Of a stretch of DNA of 64,000 nt, positions 3,101 through 9,100 are shown piece by piece. The stretch is from Octopus sinensis (lineage: Eukaryota). Under the pieces are notes generated by a model. The model searched no databases. It was not told where the DNA came from and saw only the letters and a list, made by a program, of their open reading frames with translations. The position numbers and the translations under genes are program-made. The DNA is taken from NCBI RefSeq assembly GCF_006345805.1, contig NC_043001.1, positions 27,280,001-27,344,000 of the forward strand, written 5' to 3'. Within the stretch, counting starts at the first letter, position 1. Each line of letters begins with the position of its first letter.

Positions 3101-6100
3101 GCTGTTCATTGTTTAACAAACTAGGAGTTTAATAACTTGCTTGGAAAAAGGTGAGGGTTAACAACAGGAAAGGCATCAAGCTATGGAAAAATCTCTCTCA
3201 AAGAATCCTGTCTGATCCATGCAAAAAAGAAAAAAATGGACTTTAAAATGAAAATGATGATCAATTGCAACTCTCACTTTCATGTTGTTGATTACTGATT
3301 CCTGATTAATGAAATAATTTACAGTAAGAAAGAAACCTGACACATTAAAAGCAAAAATATGAATCAGTTTTTAAGTAACCAATGAATTCTTACAAGCCAA
3401 TGATATTTTGATGTTTACGAATATTTTAGTTTTCATTTTGCAATTTAATGTCTATCACATGGTTTTAGGTTCAGTCCCATTACAGGACACATTGAGCAAT
3501 AGCCCTAACCCAACTAGTGCCTTGTGAGCGGATTTGCTTGGTGGGTAGAAGCTCATTGCGTTATAATATGTGTGTTTATGTGAATTTGTGTTTGTGTTTC
3601 TCTCTCCACTGACATTTGACAACCAGTGTTGGTTTGTTAATGTCCCTGAAATTTAGTGGCATAGCACAATCAACTGATAGAAATAGTATGAGATTTTAAA
3701 AATAAGAACTGGGGCCAATTTATTTGACTAAGCCCTTCAAACAGTACCCCAACATGACTGGAGCACTGCTGAAGGATTTAGTCAAATGACTGAAGCAAGT
3801 AAATGATAAAAGTTAAAAGATTTGTCTGACTATTTCAGATAGAGTTACAACTACACAAGCTCCAGTTACAACAACTCTTTCCCTGGACTGTCGAGTTAAT
3901 GAAATGTATTGTACAGCCACAAAGAGGTAAGATAACTCATTTTTTCTTTCTTGTTCTATTAACCATTTTAATATTCATAAGCAATGAATATGTTTCAATA
4001 GTATGTTATAACGTAGTTTGGAGGAAAAACATAATTGTTATAATCTTATGAAAGGTGAACATATTAGCTGTGAGTGTAAAAGTGTGTCTGGTTTTTCATG
4101 CAATGTATTTTTCTCTTGATCACATACTAGAATGAATATTTCCTTTCATCAACTAGACAAAAATATTTCCTTCTCAAAAAGCAATAAATCAAAATACACA
4201 TGCAAATATTGCTTAAGTTGATTTCTATATGAACAAAATTTCATTATAACAGCTGCATTTTACTGAGTTGGAAATGTGATGGACAAAATGACTGCCCTGA
4301 TGGTGAAGATGAAAAAGATTGTGGTATGTATAATAATTGAAATGATTTTAATTCAATGCAAGTGGCTATATTTAAATTTGAATATATGATTATAATAAGG
4401 TTGTCACAATTCTGTACGTGTGTAAAATAAATTAAACTGTATCATTTGTGAAAATAACCTACAGTTGATAATAAAGTTTCATCCCACTTCTGGTCAAGCT
4501 TTAAGGATATGTAAATATGACTAATAAAGTATAGCTGAGATGTATCACATTTTCATTTAATTCCTAATAATTGACAGCTTGTCTGTTCAAGCATTTCTGA
4601 GGCACAAATTTTGCACTTTATATCTCTTACCCATCTCTACTCAAGCTCACTGTTTCAGCTTCTTTTCTACTCATTGGTTTTATGTTCATGGTACATTATG
4701 CCTCTCCAAACTCCATCCCATTCTCAACAAATATACCATCTCCCTGTCAGTTGGTCACTCCCATAACCATCACTACATGAAAAATGTCCATTTGATATAA
4801 ATGTCCATTTTCTCTCCATTGTCTTTATTGTGTATCATCACCAAACCCTGTGCTAATTACTTTACTCAATCCTTTCTACTCAGAACCACATTCTTCTAGA
4901 ACTCTCTCCCTCACTGAGGCATTCACAACTAGAAGTTCAACTAATCATCAACCTTATGTAACTCACTATTTTGGGACTTCAAAGTACTTCTTTACCTAGC
5001 TGATAACATCAAGCACTTACATGGGCTGTTTGTTTCCAGCCACAATTCCATTTTCAACAGAGATTTGGTGAAGGTTTAATGTATCAAAAAAATATCAGCC
5101 TCAAACTTTTTAAACATCTGTAATGCCTGTGCTTTTCCTATATCTCAAAGTTAACTGCAGGGTTCCATCATATGATGGAATTCTGAAAATGGAATTGTGG
5201 CTGGAAACAAACAGCCCATTTAACTCTTAGAGGCGAGATTAATCTGAATAAATTGGAAAAGTATATTCAAAATATAATAGAATGAAATTAGCCTTTAAGG
5301 AGAATATGACCAATGCTAACAACCACATCTTGTTTCTTTAGTATGTCCTTCATATTTTCATTTACATTTAATTTTAAAATATACCCAAGAATATATTTTT
5401 AATCAACTCTAGTATGAATTAACACTAAACAATAGCATTCATAACAAATTCTTTTTTGTTTTTTTAGATTACATACTTGACAATTTTGAGAAACAAGACA
5501 CAAGCTTTGTCATTCATGCATTTCCAAAGGAATTCTATGTTCACATACCACTGGAGACTGTAAATTCACTTATTATTTTCTTCAATTTTCTCTTTCTTAA
5601 TTGAAAATGTGCTGGAGCCCATATACTTTTGACAAATAGAATCAATAGTTATATATCTGTATTAGATTTTTAGTTATGCTGCTAGCTTCAATGTAAGTTA
5701 TCTACAGCTAACTTCATTGGACAAAAGGTCATATATGCTTGAAGCTTGTTTTCAAGACACTTACAGTAATACAGGTTTGCAAAACAGTAGAATGTTAAAC
5801 TGGATACTTTACTGTGTCTTATTCAGAAGCTCTTACTTGGGTGTCATCAATCTACTTAGTTTGTCACATGTAGTCAATCAGTCAAAAGACCAGAGTGTCA
5901 TATAACTGCACATCTCATCTTTTGGCTAATTACCAGGGTGTAGTAGGTCTATTCAATTATAGATGTTCTCCCTTAACAATAAGGCTTTGAATCTATACAA
6001 AAATGAACCATTATTAAAAGCATATGTGTTGAACAGCTAGGATTTCAATTAAAGTAGTGCACATTCTCTCCTGATGACCCCCTGAAACCTAGCGGTGCCT

Positions 6101-9100
6101 GGAATGCAGAGTTTTCAACTGACTGCACTTGCACAAGCAAGATGTTTCCAATTCTCTCCAACGTAGATGGTATATCTATAAGATACTCATACTATTTATA
6201 CTGATAACTCATTTAATATATAGTCAAACTAATAAAGTATGCTTCACATCAAATGAAAGATATGGGATATTAATTTGAAGGACAATGGTTAAAAGACATG
6301 CATTTTTTATGTCATGCTACAGTCTACAGCTCATCGAATCAGTGTATTTATAACCTCCAGCCTACATTTGATCTCAAGATTCTAGTTTTCTAATTTGTTG
6401 AATAATGTTTCAATAAAGAAAAAATGAAAAATAGCAAATAGTGCAGGTATCAATCTAATTGATTGTGAATTCATAGTCTACTGCGGGTGTTTTACTATCT
6501 ATAGGTAAAACACTTAGTCCTGCTAGCTTTGTATAACTTGACTGGAGAATGAGCATCAGGCCTTTGTGACAAAAGTTAACACTTCACAAACCAATGATCT
6601 ATGAGAGTGATTGCAAATTATGGCTCTGAAGGATGTCTTTCTGGATGGCATGCCTAACAGTTTTTCAGTATTGTGGTTCACCTGATGATGAGTCATGTTT
6701 CACGCAGCCTGCTTCTCAAAAAAGATTGCCTATGTCTAATTCATGGACCCAATGGTCTATGATTTGTGAAAGGATCAACAAACCTATAAATAAATTAGTA
6801 GCTAACTGTAATTGGGTAACATAAGTTTTATTATCAATTTTTATGTGCCTCAACTATGTTATTCCAATATAGTGGCTACTAATTTAATAAACCCCTGAAA
6901 AATATTTTAAAATTCTGTCAGCTTTATCAAGATTGTTAAACACTCCAAATAATGTGTTTTGATTATCTTTTTACTACATTAAATCATTCTACTCTACTCT
7001 CGAGCTGGCAGAAATATTAGCACGCCAAGCAAAATGCTTAGCAGTATTTCATCTGTCTTTATGTTCAGAATTCAAATTCTGTCAAGGTCAACTTTGCCTT
7101 TCATCCTTTCAAGGTCAATAAATTAGGTACCAGTTGTGCACTGGAGTCGATCTAATCGACTGGCCCCCTCCCCAAAATTTCGGGTCTTGTGCTTAGAGTA
7201 GAAAAGATTTTACTCTACTCTTGTTTTAATATGTTTTCTATAAAATTTATCAAAATTATATTACTGATACACTTCTTGAAATAATTTTTTTTTTTATTAT
7301 TTCTGAATTTCTATCTTCAGTGTGCCAAAAATTGTTTATATCATCGAGAGTTTGTCTGTAAAGCATTCCATTATTATGAGAAGGACTACCAATGCAAGTT
7401 GTTTGATACAATGAAGAGTCTGAGCCTTAGACCACTTTCCAGTGGATCTTATTATGTACTTTCACGTAAGGCCATCTTTGATTCTTCATTGTTACCAGGA
7501 AACATATTCAGTAATTAACATTGAGCTAAACTCTTTCAATACTAACCTGCCCAAAACTACTCTTGGTTCTATTCCTGCTTTAATATGATTTAAATTAATG
7601 CCTGCCATTAAAATCACATGTTAATTTCTGCTTCAAACTTCAGCTGTAAATTCATTGTTTTTAATGAAATTAATTGAAATAAAGGCAGTTTATTTCAACC
7701 GAAATATGGCAACAAAAGAGTTAAATAAAAGAAAATTTAATCATTACTTTCTCAATACATCAGCAACTGTTTATGTGTATTCAGAATGAAATATATTTTC
7801 TAGAAGTTGCGTTTTACTGCAGAAAATGTCTTGTTTCCATATTAGTGATTCGGGTTTGCATCTTGACTTGAGAAAATATCTGTCTAAAAGACTGAGATTT
7901 AACGAATGAAGGATTAGGGAGTTGCTTAGAGAATGATTGAATTGGTTGTGACTGGTGGTAATTGTTGAGGATTATGACACTTTGCAGTAAAATCTACACA
8001 CATTCTAAAAAATCTACATTCAGTTAGGAAGAAACCTTGCACTTTCTCCAAATGACATTTTGTATTGGTTCAGAAACTGAAAAATTTCCGCAACTTCTTT
8101 TCTCCCAACACTTACCATTTTACCATGTAAATACCAAGCAATGCCTATCTTGTTACTTTGCCAAGCTTCAACAATGTAGATGAAGCAGTATCTTTTGTCT
8201 TGTACCATAAACAAATGTTTATAAAAAGTATTTTAACTAAATTTCTGGTTGTAATTTTATTTAAATATAGAGTAGGAATGTTCTTAATTCCTGAAACCAG
8301 AATTGGTTTCTGTTTTTGAGCTATGAACAAATCACTACTTATTCCAGTTTGTTTGACTGACAAAACAAGATCCACTCCTACTTCACAGTTGAGCAGAAGT
8401 AAAACAAAAAAAATATGTATAAAAGAATCATTAAAATATGTGGGTTAATTAGGGTGAGTTTCAGCTTAGCTGTATGATATTTAGTTTGTTGCCTTAATTA
8501 TCTAAATTTAATGAAGTTGACTTAGAATTTCCTATTATTGAAAATTGCAAAATAAATTCTATAAACCAAGTATGGAACCGATCTTTAACTCCAGGAGCCA
8601 ATGTAAAAGTTACAAACTGCAATTCCAAACTTTGAATTCATAGAATCAATGGAACAATAAATTTTATAGCTGAATGTCCTTCTTAAAATAATGACATACT
8701 CAACCAAGGAACAGGAGTTATACTTATTTTCAGCAAGATGAATTAAAACTATAGTCATAAAGTCTATATCTGTGAGTAGAATACAATGTCAGTGATGAGG
8801 TTTGAATTTAATACATCTTGTCTTGAAGTTCTGTTTTTAAATCTTTCAGTTATTGTTATTAACTCATGTCCAAATGTTTATTACTGTGTCTGTTTATATT
8901 TTTCATATAATAATTTTTTTTATGGTGTTGATTCTTGTAGAAAAGTGCACTTCCACAGACTTCCAATGTGACAATGGAAGATGTATTCCAGGGGAAGAAA
9001 AATGTAATGGAAGGGATAACTGCAATGATTTTTCTGATGAACAAGACTGTGGTATGTAATATTTTATGTATATATGTGTATGGCTGTGTGTATCTCTCTC

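Follow-up and report, generated by a model that had tools for sequence, protein, structure and literature searches.

Intron homogenisation by gene conversion as the probable cause of apparently fast-evolving PAN exons in two tandem octopus serine-protease genes

Within the analysed window, the whole stretch of 64,000 nucleotides from Octopus sinensis, the compared exons are the PAN modules (plasminogen/HGF-type) of two tandem paralogous mosaic serine-protease genes. Between the two genes these exons have diverged more than most of the surrounding intron sequence, and this difference is probably explained by gene conversion that homogenised the introns: the exons look faster because intron divergence was reset and not through an acceleration of their own. 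The original prediction had offered this as the second of two readings, and it gained support from species-specific intron variants and from a polymorphic gene-1-to-gene-2 tract seen against a second allele.

The genes were identified by a representative search, named homologues, exon mapping, an N gap and the PAN fold. Their domains are arranged in the order SRCR, C-type lectin, Kringle, several LDLa, PAN, LDLa, SRCR, LDLa, SRCR and trypsin, with Kringle, SRCR and a C-terminal trypsin in one chain (precomputed Pfam domains of proteins P0002, P0096 and P0104, and reading of the sequences). Both PAN copies exceed the Pfam cut-off of 21.4 bits for the PAN_1 profile (31.4 and 35.3 bits), and cysteines C32, C36, C44 and C56 are invariant in an alignment of 22 sequences. 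An AF2 model of the PAN (pLDDT 90.7) has its best match in plasminogen PAp (TM 0.78, 2.0 A) and also matches the HGF N domain; the predicted octopus fold superposes on both. Domain content suggests that these are neurotrypsin/SVH-1-like mosaic serine proteases. They share the set PAN, Kringle, SRCR, LDLa and trypsin with vertebrate PRSS12, plasminogen and C. elegans SVH-1, the function of which has been described (PMC11305532). Unlike the HGF/plasminogen/neurotrypsin proteases, the octopus genes also encode a C-type lectin and numerous LDLa modules, and their PAN lies mid-chain, not N-terminally. Gene 1 is labelled 'ANP-converting-enzyme-like' and gene 2 'svh-1-like'; these protease names are automatic annotations.

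The copies had been taken for repeated cassettes of a single gene, with E7 and E30 in one exon numbering (kept here as labels). They belong instead to two paralogous genes on two contigs, separated by a gap of 100 N. Contig A carries gene 1's 3' portion but lacks that gene's protease exons, and contig B holds gene 2, starting in the intron that precedes the C-type-lectin exon. The trypsin exons of both genes lie outside the window or in the gap, and none were found in 24-29 kb of the window; gene 1 of O. vulgaris possesses its own trypsin domain. At least one more locus of gene-1 type, LOC115211766, is present in O. sinensis. Gene 2 was also assembled a second time, on an unplaced contig (L001), which window positions 26079-64000 match at 99.62%. 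NCBI annotates svh-1-like on that unplaced contig, and the chromosome carries a chimeric 156-kb NCBI model; the chromosome model LOC115211767 is a chimera spanning the scaffold gap. The following features were located.

3839..3926, forward strand: first exon of gene 1 LDLa module C (E5), from a four-copy cassette alignment, splice sites and tblastn; it codes a Thr-rich linker and the first half of the LDLa, and tblastn of O. sinensis proteins P0104/P0106 is 100% identical.
4253..4323, forward strand: second exon of gene 1 LDLa module C (E6, 71 nt), with 6/71 differences from gene 2 E29.
5468..5559, forward strand: E7, first exon of the gene 1 PAN module, phase 1 to 0; spliced together, E7 and E8 encode the same sequence as O. 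sinensis P0036/P0104/P0106.
7321..7465, forward strand: E8, second exon of the gene 1 PAN module, phase 0 to 1; all differences from gene 2 lie in the core 7328-7426.
8943..9052, forward strand: E9, gene 1 LDLa exon 3' of the PAN, inside the homogenised block.
25979..26078, no strand: 100-N scaffold gap, from contig A to contig B.
58427..58942, forward strand: last gene 2 LDLa module before the PAN (E28/E29), exons 58427-58535 and 58872-58942.
61888..61979, forward strand: E30, first exon of the gene 2 PAN module, 100% identical to O. vulgaris/O. sinensis svh-1-like proteins.
63698..63842, forward strand: E31, second exon of the gene 2 PAN module, a mosaic on this contig.

Gene 1 positions 5326-7623 align to 61746-64000. 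The nucleotide counts given earlier proved exact for the exons (E7/E30, 10/92; E8/E31, 8/145) and were recovered for the introns (8/316 at 5560-5875, 0/1071 at 6250-7320 and 3/158 after E8). For E6 the six differences from E29 were confirmed, as was the divergence of its downstream intron (13/345, 3.8%), but the excess of exon over intron is not significant (p = 0.11). Upstream of E6 the intron divergence reaches 20%, and E6 holds the left edge of the block common to both genes. When gene 1 was compared with the unconverted L001 allele, the PAN exons differed at 24/237 positions (10.1%) and the introns at 93/3164 (2.9%; p = 9e-7). The intron directly upstream of E7 (5326-5467) differs at 13/142 positions (9.2%), like E7 itself (p = 0.66), indicating that E7 is not an exon-limited island. 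The contrast between E8 (5.5%) and the non-identical introns (2.5%) falls short of significance (p = 0.06), and E9 shows no elevation, with 2/110 differences from the L001 allele. Segmentation without regard to exons needed four strata, the fourth of which (7328-7623) is 3.7% diverged; the first three are as follows.

5326..5543, forward strand: old-divergence stratum, 10.6% (segmentation; five-sequence alignment and distances), comprising the intron upstream of E7 and most of E7.
5544..6247, forward strand: homogenised intron stratum, 2.6% between paralogs with three indels, 9-11% between species.
6248..7327, forward strand: zero-difference tract of 1,080 bp, donor copy in gene 1 (segmentation, three-way site patterns), containing a SINE-like repeat at ~7001-7222 (repeat matches).

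In the first stratum the outlier is O. sinensis gene 1, set against gene 2 and both O. bimaculoides copies. Identity over 1,080 bp, against an overall difference of 2.3%, has a chance probability of about 1e-13.

Comparison with O. bimaculoides showed that the introns evolve in concert. Intron divergence is 0.7-4% between paralogs within a species and 6-11% between orthologs; over 5560-5850 the distance between paralogs is 2.7% (O. sinensis) or 0.7% (O. bimaculoides), and that between species 9-11%. Introns of both species carry species-specific variants common to the two paralogs. The intron at 7466-8942 has 30 sites unique to gene 1, 31 to gene 2 and 56 to O. bimaculoides, and the corresponding counts in E8 are 9, 4 and 5. 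Introns group by species and PAN exon cores by gene (topology contrast p = 0.044), with gene 1 as the outlier in both E7 and E8. Here 'gene 1' orthology between O. sinensis and O. bimaculoides is assigned by architecture (three LDLa cassettes before the PAN), not by a sequence tree; the O. bimaculoides loci contain many N gaps, and the gene-1-like E8 is absent from them. At the exon ends, codons 31 and 74 are in a derived state common to both O. sinensis paralogs. We infer that the duplication is older than the split from O. bimaculoides. A block of ~5 kb that begins at E6, includes the PAN and ends at the next LDLa exon would have undergone repeated interlocus gene conversion, which would hold introns, exon ends and the neighbouring LDLa exon at 0-4% within species. 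Two segments, 5326-5543 and 7328-7426, would have escaped homogenisation in the O. sinensis/O. vulgaris lineage and kept an older divergence of ~10%, at silent and replacement sites alike. The exon cores may have escaped because homogenised copies were selected against or because heteroduplexes were rejected where mismatches are dense.

Clustered differences would also be expected if the duplication were young, the introns showed its true age and the exon cores had been overwritten from a third, distant PAN paralog by ectopic conversion confined to exons, the only parts in which homology to that paralog would survive. Six differences do lie within 15 nt (7375-7389) and two more at 7328/7331, and LOC115211766 is a further gene-1-type locus. 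No such donor was found in the window or in the fetched loci, however; within these, the patch sequence turned up nowhere but at 7372 and 63749; all known gene-1-type proteins carry the same PAN, and the diverged stratum of E7 reaches at least 140 bp into the upstream intron and is thus not exon-limited. We regard a third donor as very improbable.

The original prediction also held that the exon changes fall almost only at replacement sites. This was not borne out: Nei-Gojobori counting gave 4.0 silent differences over 46 silent sites and 14 replacement differences over 191 replacement sites, with no excess of the latter (dN/dS = 0.83, p = 0.76); silent steps in three two-hit codons had been overlooked. 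Against the unconverted L001 allele dN/dS is 0.93. Exon silent sites are themselves about 3.6 times more diverged than introns (5/46.7, pS 0.107, against 0.029; p = 0.012). This silent-site excess amounts to five changes, and a per-branch test gave p = 0.054. These values, together with the E7-like divergence of E7's upstream intron, argue against the first of the two readings, in which exons and introns are of the same age and the exons diverged chiefly because diversifying or positive selection for PAN binding specificity drove replacement changes to fixation. In none of the comparisons is dN/dS significantly above 1 (pairwise 0.83 and 0.93, gene-1 branch 1.53, E8 1.94; p = 0.54-1.0). Moreover, E7 of O. 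bimaculoides is homogenised between its paralogs (3/92), and on this reading the grouping of introns by species is inexplicable without conversion. As the main cause, selection therefore appears unlikely to us.

A secondary and weaker signal is that the gene 1 PAN gains replacements about four times faster than the gene 2 PAN, and it is here that selection finds its evidence. Of the changes assigned to the gene-1 PAN branch, 15.5 are replacements and 2.5 silent, for a dN/dS of 1.53; the gene-2 branch has 0.36. The gene-1 replacements make up 15.5 of the 24 exon differences, which is most of the exon excess. dN of gene 1 (8.3%) exceeds that of gene 2 (p = 0.01) and the intron divergence on the gene-1 branch itself (2.1%; p = 2e-5). 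In E8 every one of the nine gene-1 changes alters the amino acid, six gene-1 changes hit residues that are identical from Argonauta to Octopus gene 2 (T3I, I15V, R34K, T35N, G53D, K54Y), and the cysteines and splice sites are intact. On the predicted model the 16 variable PAN residues are spread over the N-terminal helix, the main helix, four of the six strands and a number of loops; the four replacements at residues 50, 52, 53 and 54 lie together in and beside a single beta-hairpin turn. The branch asymmetry is accounted for just as well by relaxed constraint as by selection.

The latest layer of the proposed history would be a gene-1-to-gene-2 tract with an edge inside a codon.

62625..63704, forward strand: zero-difference tract, acceptor copy in gene 2, with gene-1 bases at 17 informative sites where L001 differs.
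63764..63766, forward strand: TAG stop codon in E31, with T and A from gene 1 TAC (Tyr) and G from gene 2 AAG (Lys).

At all 22 allelic differences between the window and L001 in 62659-63764, gene 2 of the window has the gene 1 base (cluster P = 7e-15). The L001 states at these sites match gene 2 of O. bimaculoides and Argonauta, so the transfer ran from gene 1 to gene 2. Within E31, positions 63705 and 63708 are of gene-2 type, 63709-63765 form a gene-1-type patch of 57 bp, and gene-2 type resumes at 63766; across the informative sites of the patch (63752-63764) YYEKD replaces YRENG. The 1,080-bp block and the 57-bp patch show that gene-1 sequence has been pasted into gene 2 on this contig. 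The gene 2 codon is AAG in L001, O. bimaculoides and Argonauta, and TAG is therefore a chimera of TAC and AAG, placing the tract edge inside the codon. L001 likewise carries a run of 847 bp identical to gene 1 (6420-7266), and tracts thus recur at this place.

The youngest tract is presumably a biological conversion, but it could still be an assembly chimera. Outside three clusters the window contig differs from L001 by only about 0.04%, and the O. sinensis assembly has 5.2% duplicated BUSCOs (PMC10700109); with contigs so nearly identical in a duplicated assembly, the tract and its stop could stem from consensus or polishing. The zero-difference block, the YYEKD patch and TAG would then be artefacts of a long-read draft with paralogs about 97% identical, and the real gene 2 would be L001. 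Consistent with this, two of the three tight clusters overlap repeated sequence, redundant contigs are many and the scaffold gap lies next door. The stop would disable an otherwise conserved gene, of which L001, O. vulgaris and O. bimaculoides all have intact versions, and the placement of svh-1-like on the unplaced contig and the chimeric chromosome model point the same way. The run of 1,080 bp plus 57 bp is clean, however, with sharp edges and no scattered miscalls; L001 has a gene-1-identical run of its own; and concerted intron evolution appears independently in the O. bimaculoides assembly, made by other methods, so that real conversion is to be expected. Patchy tracts are normal products of heteroduplex repair. 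We consider the artefact possible, though the less favoured origin of the tract. The svh-1-like gene on this scaffold thus bears a stop at a conversion or chimera edge that neither the unplaced contig nor O. vulgaris has, and exchange between paralogs, real or artefactual, can create apparent null alleles. The overwrite pattern was noticed partly because the recent tract left a stop codon.

The E31 stop and a pairwise dN/dS near 1 would also suit a decaying pseudo-exon or pseudogene in copy 2, with exon differences as neutral decay. The stop is specific to this contig, though; the gene 2 PAN encoded by L001, O. vulgaris and O. bimaculoides is intact; nearly all changes lie on the gene-1 branch, the gene-2 branch has the low dN/dS given above, and splice sites are intact. 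Such decay is the least credible of the explanations weighed here. A further, doubtful combination is that positive selection reshaped the gene 1 PAN in the O. vulgaris/O. sinensis lineage (13 replacements), that selection removes conversions erasing its new specificity and that the TAG haplotype, the product of one such conversion, is a real segregating null allele; if true, it would be a visible cost of concerted evolution in a cephalopod neurotrypsin/HGF-type gene pair. Purging of conversions from exons is plausible, since the conversion in E31 made a stop codon. Should the tract be real, it would be a clear example of a conversion tract ending in a codon to give a nonsense allele, and the gene pair would allow asymmetric evolution of a duplicated PAN binding module to be tested.

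The gene conversion pattern itself is already known. In the tandem L/M opsin genes of primates, introns are homogenised by gene conversion and central exons are kept apart (PMC3213168). As here, opsin exons exceed introns in divergence at silent and replacement sites alike with dN/dS not above 1, introns group by species and exons by gene, and tracts are mostly intronic (PMC3213168). In opsins, in contrast, a known phenotype, spectral tuning, accounts for the removal of exon conversions; in the octopus, E7 is homogenised in the sister species, one paralog has a raised replacement rate, and an exon-invading conversion is seen together with its damaging product. Short 'islands of divergence' in homogenised paralogs and mosaic alleles made by conversion are likewise described for Tigriopus GOT1 paralogs and a ruminant CEACAM1 paralog (PMC3728101, PMC7042247); gene family and taxon are different there, and the octopus DNA covers two alleles and two species. 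Conotoxins and snake venom PLA2 share the outward pattern of conserved introns and hypervariable mature-peptide exons, and in conotoxins significant positive selection is reported at mature-peptide exon sites (PMC3862624). The octopus protein differs from these in being no toxin, in showing no dN/dS significantly above 1 and in owing its low intron divergence to conversion. Exons that seem faster than introns between paralogs are thus to be read first as introns reset by gene conversion; silent-site divergence, both flanking introns, a second allele and a sister species are the checks that separate conversion from positive selection. Tract edges lie 7-40 nt from exon borders three times, a placement that pure chance explains poorly.

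Index-free searching with the PAN peptide matched octopus proteins at 80% identity across all 79 residues; a word-index homology search with the 78-aa PAN gave no hits. In O. vulgaris and O. sinensis the matched proteins are named 'serine protease svh-1-like', other matches carry the name 'atrial natriuretic peptide-converting enzyme-like' (LOC115211766 and LOC115211767), those in O. bimaculoides are 'neurotrypsin' and a 209-aa fragment, and Argonauta hians is represented by one gene. The domain order is signal peptide, SRCR, C-type lectin, Kringle, several LDLa, PAN, LDLa, SRCR, LDLa, SRCR and trypsin. 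The product of exons E7 and E8 is identical to the O. sinensis gene-1-type (ANP-converting-enzyme-like) proteins, and that of E30 and E31 equals the svh-1-like (gene 2) PAN found in O. vulgaris and O. sinensis, apart from YYEKD* in place of YRENGK. Exact look-up of a 204-aa window ORF among database proteins gave no match. Exon mapping produced the following layout (positions are those of the window unless a locus is named).

Layout of the two genes
1-24211, gene 1, 3' part
25979-26078, scaffold gap of exactly 100 N, joining two contigs
29421 to window end, gene 2

The window is devoid of the gene 1 protease exons and of the gene 2 5' exons (signal peptide, first SRCR), and no trypsin exons were found between the gene 1 and gene 2 parts. 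Because no protease exons follow the last SRCR exon of gene 1, we considered one gene with an internal 56-kb duplication; the 100-N gap and the trypsin domain that O. vulgaris gene 1 has of its own rule this out. Instead of one gene built of 23-exon cassettes, the window thus contains two paralogous genes on two contigs, and since the gap lies between them, the apparent 56-kb spacing of the PAN copies is no real distance. The RefSeq model LOC115211767 (P0106) spans 156 kb, couples the gene-1-type exons of the window to gene 2 protease exons and ends 387 bp before CDC27, at the same CDC27 junction as svh-1-like on L001, a second assembled copy of O. sinensis gene 2. It is probably a chimeric model across the gap, due to the gap and to a stop codon in E31.

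Self-comparison of the window showed that 5326-7623 matches 61746-64000, the window end. Global alignment with segment counts reproduced exactly the differences that had been counted by eye.

Differences between the paralogous copies, by segment
5468-5559 vs 61888-61979, E7 vs E30, 10/92
5560-5875, intron, 8/316
5876-6249, intron, 9/316 and three indels
6250-7320, intron, 0/1071
7321-7465 vs 63698-63842, E8 vs E31, 8/145
after E8, 3/158

Given 51 substitutions in 2,240 sites, the probability of a 1,080-base identical run is ~1e-13; these counts establish that the pattern of low-difference introns beside diverged PAN exons is real. Both spliced products, E7+E8 and E30+E31, exceed the Pfam threshold for PAN_1, and on the window contig E31 carries a TAG. 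E7 and its upstream intron (5326-5467; 13/142, 9.2%) are equally diverged (p = 0.66), and the excess of E8 (5.5%) over the non-identical introns (2.5%) is not significant (p = 0.06). A change-point analysis run blind to exons preferred four strata.

Strata of paralog divergence (change-point analysis)
5326-5543, 10.6%
5544-6247, 2.6%
6248-7327, 0%
7328-7623, 3.7%

The exon excess also claimed for the LDLa exons E6 and E29 is not significant (6/71 vs 13/345 in the intron, p = 0.11), and the intron upstream of E6 is 20% diverged. Across the LDLa cassettes A-D no excess of exons over introns was found (22/159 vs 120/887, p = 0.9).

LDLa cassettes
1-940, cassette A, gene 1
1192-2900, cassette B, gene 1
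3440-4700, cassette C, gene 1
57816-59400, cassette D, gene 2

These cassettes are mosaic: in the second exon D shares variants with A and C with B, the closest pair in the downstream intron is C and D, and B has a 390-bp insert at 2042-2429.

L001 is the O. sinensis unplaced contig VCDQ01000993.1, which matches window 26079-64000 at 99.62%, and it allowed a three-way alignment of gene 1, window gene 2 and L001 gene 2, numbered on gene 1. The true paralog differences, shared by both gene 2 copies, are all those in E7, those in the upstream intron, a further 15 within 5614-6247, and those at 7328, 7331, 7389, 7412-7426 and 7500-7601. Window gene 2 has gene-1 bases, and L001 differs, at 17 sites within 6282-6419 and 7267-7297 and, inside E31, at 7375, 7376, 7383, 7385 and 7387. 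The L001 states at the exon sites are those of O. bimaculoides and Argonauta gene 2, which makes gene 1 the donor and gene 2 the recipient of the transfer. At codon 54 gene 1 has TAC and gene 2 has AAG; the window contig reads TAG, a stop codon that arises because the tract edge falls inside the codon. Its rescue by A-to-I RNA editing (UAG to UGG) is no more than a remote possibility. Over 38 kb the two gene 2 copies show 95 allelic differences with only three clusters, one of them made up of these 22 gene-1-state sites (P = 7e-15). Across 6420-7266 L001 is itself identical to gene 1, indicating that tracts recur at the same place. A third PAN copy that could have served as donor was not found in the window and the fetched loci.

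Outside the three clusters L001 hardly differs from the window contig (background about 0.04%), and the O. sinensis assembly is known to be redundant (PMC10700109); the newest tract and its stop codon could thus be mimicked by a consensus that mixes the paralogs. We consider such an artefact unlikely, though a real possibility, and the older layers, visible both in L001 and in O. bimaculoides, are unaffected by it. At 62300-62303 window gene 2 has an 11-bp deletion with three adjoining substitutions that are absent from gene 1 (5878-5894) and from L001 (47312-47328 of that contig); these changes are private to the window contig or a consensus error.

The older layers were followed in O. bimaculoides, at the gene 2 ortholog adjoining CDC27 (L002) and a gene-1-like copy with three LDLa cassettes (L003), and in O. 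vulgaris at the protein level. Octopus bimaculoides split off about 34 My ago and O. vulgaris about 2.5 My ago (PMC10700109). Paralog divergence in the intron 5560-5850 is 2.7% within O. sinensis and 0.7% within O. bimaculoides, against 9-11% between species, and species-specific indels are common to both paralogs. Unique sites in the intron 7466-8942 number 30 for gene 1, 31 for gene 2 and 56 for O. bimaculoides, which groups the two paralogs; for E8 they are 9, 4 and 5, making gene 1 the outlier. The O. sinensis paralogs have two derived codons in common, 31 and 74, both at exon ends. In O. bimaculoides E7 is homogenised (3/92) but its upstream intron is not, so the borders of homogenised tracts vary from species to species. 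Those in O. sinensis happen to exclude the core of E7, together with the intron preceding it, and the core of E8. Set against these split times, exon silent divergence is of the order of intron divergence between species, and paralog intron divergence is much younger. In O. vulgaris gene 1 (P0035/P0102) the two variable positions nearest the ends of E7 (5474, 5543) hold the gene-2 states T3 and R26, with gene-1 states retained between them, which would fit conversion tracts reaching slightly deeper into the exon from both sides in that species. Large N gaps (28449-29726 of L002, 24262-33912 of L003) remove most of the gene 2 E7-E8 intron and, in the gene-1-like copy, all sequence downstream of E7. 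The distance from L003 to L002 is ~150 kb, with L003 on the record's opposite strand; the 209-aa model of L003 runs from E7 into the intron.

With L001 taken as the unconverted gene 2 allele, gene 1 could be compared cleanly with its paralog.

Gene 1 vs L001 (introns as reference)
introns, 93/3164 (2.9%)
PAN exons, 24/237 (10.1%), p = 9e-7
silent sites, 5/46.7 (10.7%), p = 0.012
replacement sites, 19/190 (10.0%), p = 1.2e-5
LDLa exon after PAN, 2/110, not raised over introns

The greater divergence of exons than of introns is real in this comparison (24/237 vs 93/3164), with the qualification that the E7 upstream intron is equally diverged. The further claim that change fell almost only at replacement sites fails on normalisation: between the window copies 4.0 of 46 silent and 14 of 191 replacement sites differ (Nei-Gojobori dN/dS = 0.83), without replacement excess, silent steps having escaped the count because they are concealed in three two-hit codons. 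Overall dN/dS between gene 1 and L001 is 0.93. Changes were polarised with O. bimaculoides and Argonauta.

Changes by branch
gene 1, 18 changes, silent 2.5, replacement 15.5, dN/dS 1.53
gene 2, 6 changes, silent 2.5, replacement 3.5, dN/dS 0.36

Silent change is equal on the two branches (about 5%), dN is higher for gene 1 (p = 0.01) and exceeds gene 1's own intron branch (p = 2e-5), and six gene-1 replacements fall at residues conserved from Argonauta to Octopus gene 2. No test, pairwise or by branch, shows dN/dS to be above 1. Relaxed constraint and positive selection on the gene 1 PAN fit the asymmetry in these data equally well; diversifying selection is conceivable for the gene 1 branch only. 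The PAN model is confident (pLDDT 90.7) and superposes both on plasminogen PAp (TM 0.78) and on the HGF N domain. The 16 variable residues are distributed over several loops, four of the six strands, the N-terminal helix and the main helix; a group of four sits at 50-54, within or adjoining one hairpin turn.

The species-grouped introns, the L001 mosaic and the zero-difference block bear out the suggestion that conversion homogenises the introns. Gene conversion resetting the introns, rather than faster exon evolution, is the main cause of the exon-intron contrast; exons would look faster without having sped up. Such resetting is already known, and the instance here is new. The L/M opsins show the same signature, exons and silent sites above introns with dN/dS not above 1, and there it was ascribed to conversion of the introns and not to divergent selection (PMC3213168). 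By-products of the analysis are a chimeric stop codon, a gene mis-modelled across a scaffold gap and a testable asymmetry in PAN evolution.

Further features were noted in the window.

Further tight clusters of differences from L001
45410-45647, 10 sites
47999-48523, 18 sites
51073-51594, 27 sites

Repeats and transposon remnants
16756-17061, + strand, ORF with PHD-finger match (E = 7e-7)
27679-28131, + strand, mariner-type transposase remnant (Pfam Transposase_1, E = 2e-27)
49616-49972, + strand, mariner-type transposase remnant (Pfam Transposase_1, E = 4e-15)
7001-7222 and about 10 others, e.g. 32394-32586, 36072-36286, 41962-42159, 42805-43001, 53925-54085, 63378-63591, SINE-like repeat

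These three further clusters may be paralog or repeat exchanges or consensus errors. That at 47999-48523 overlaps the LDLa exon 48168-48236, which ends ...EKDC with last base A in the window and ...EKNC with last base G in L001; no donor was identified for the cluster over this exon. Both transposase remnants are intronic in gene 2, the first upstream of the lectin exon (29421), the second between LDLa exons and within a region rich in L001 differences. The PHD-finger ORF lies in a gene 1 intron just upstream of the LDLa exon 17245-17355 and is probably part of a repeat or retro-element. The SINE-like repeat is about 200 bp long, with numerous copies in either orientation that are 72-88% identical, and one copy, common to both paralogs, lies inside the converted intron tract.
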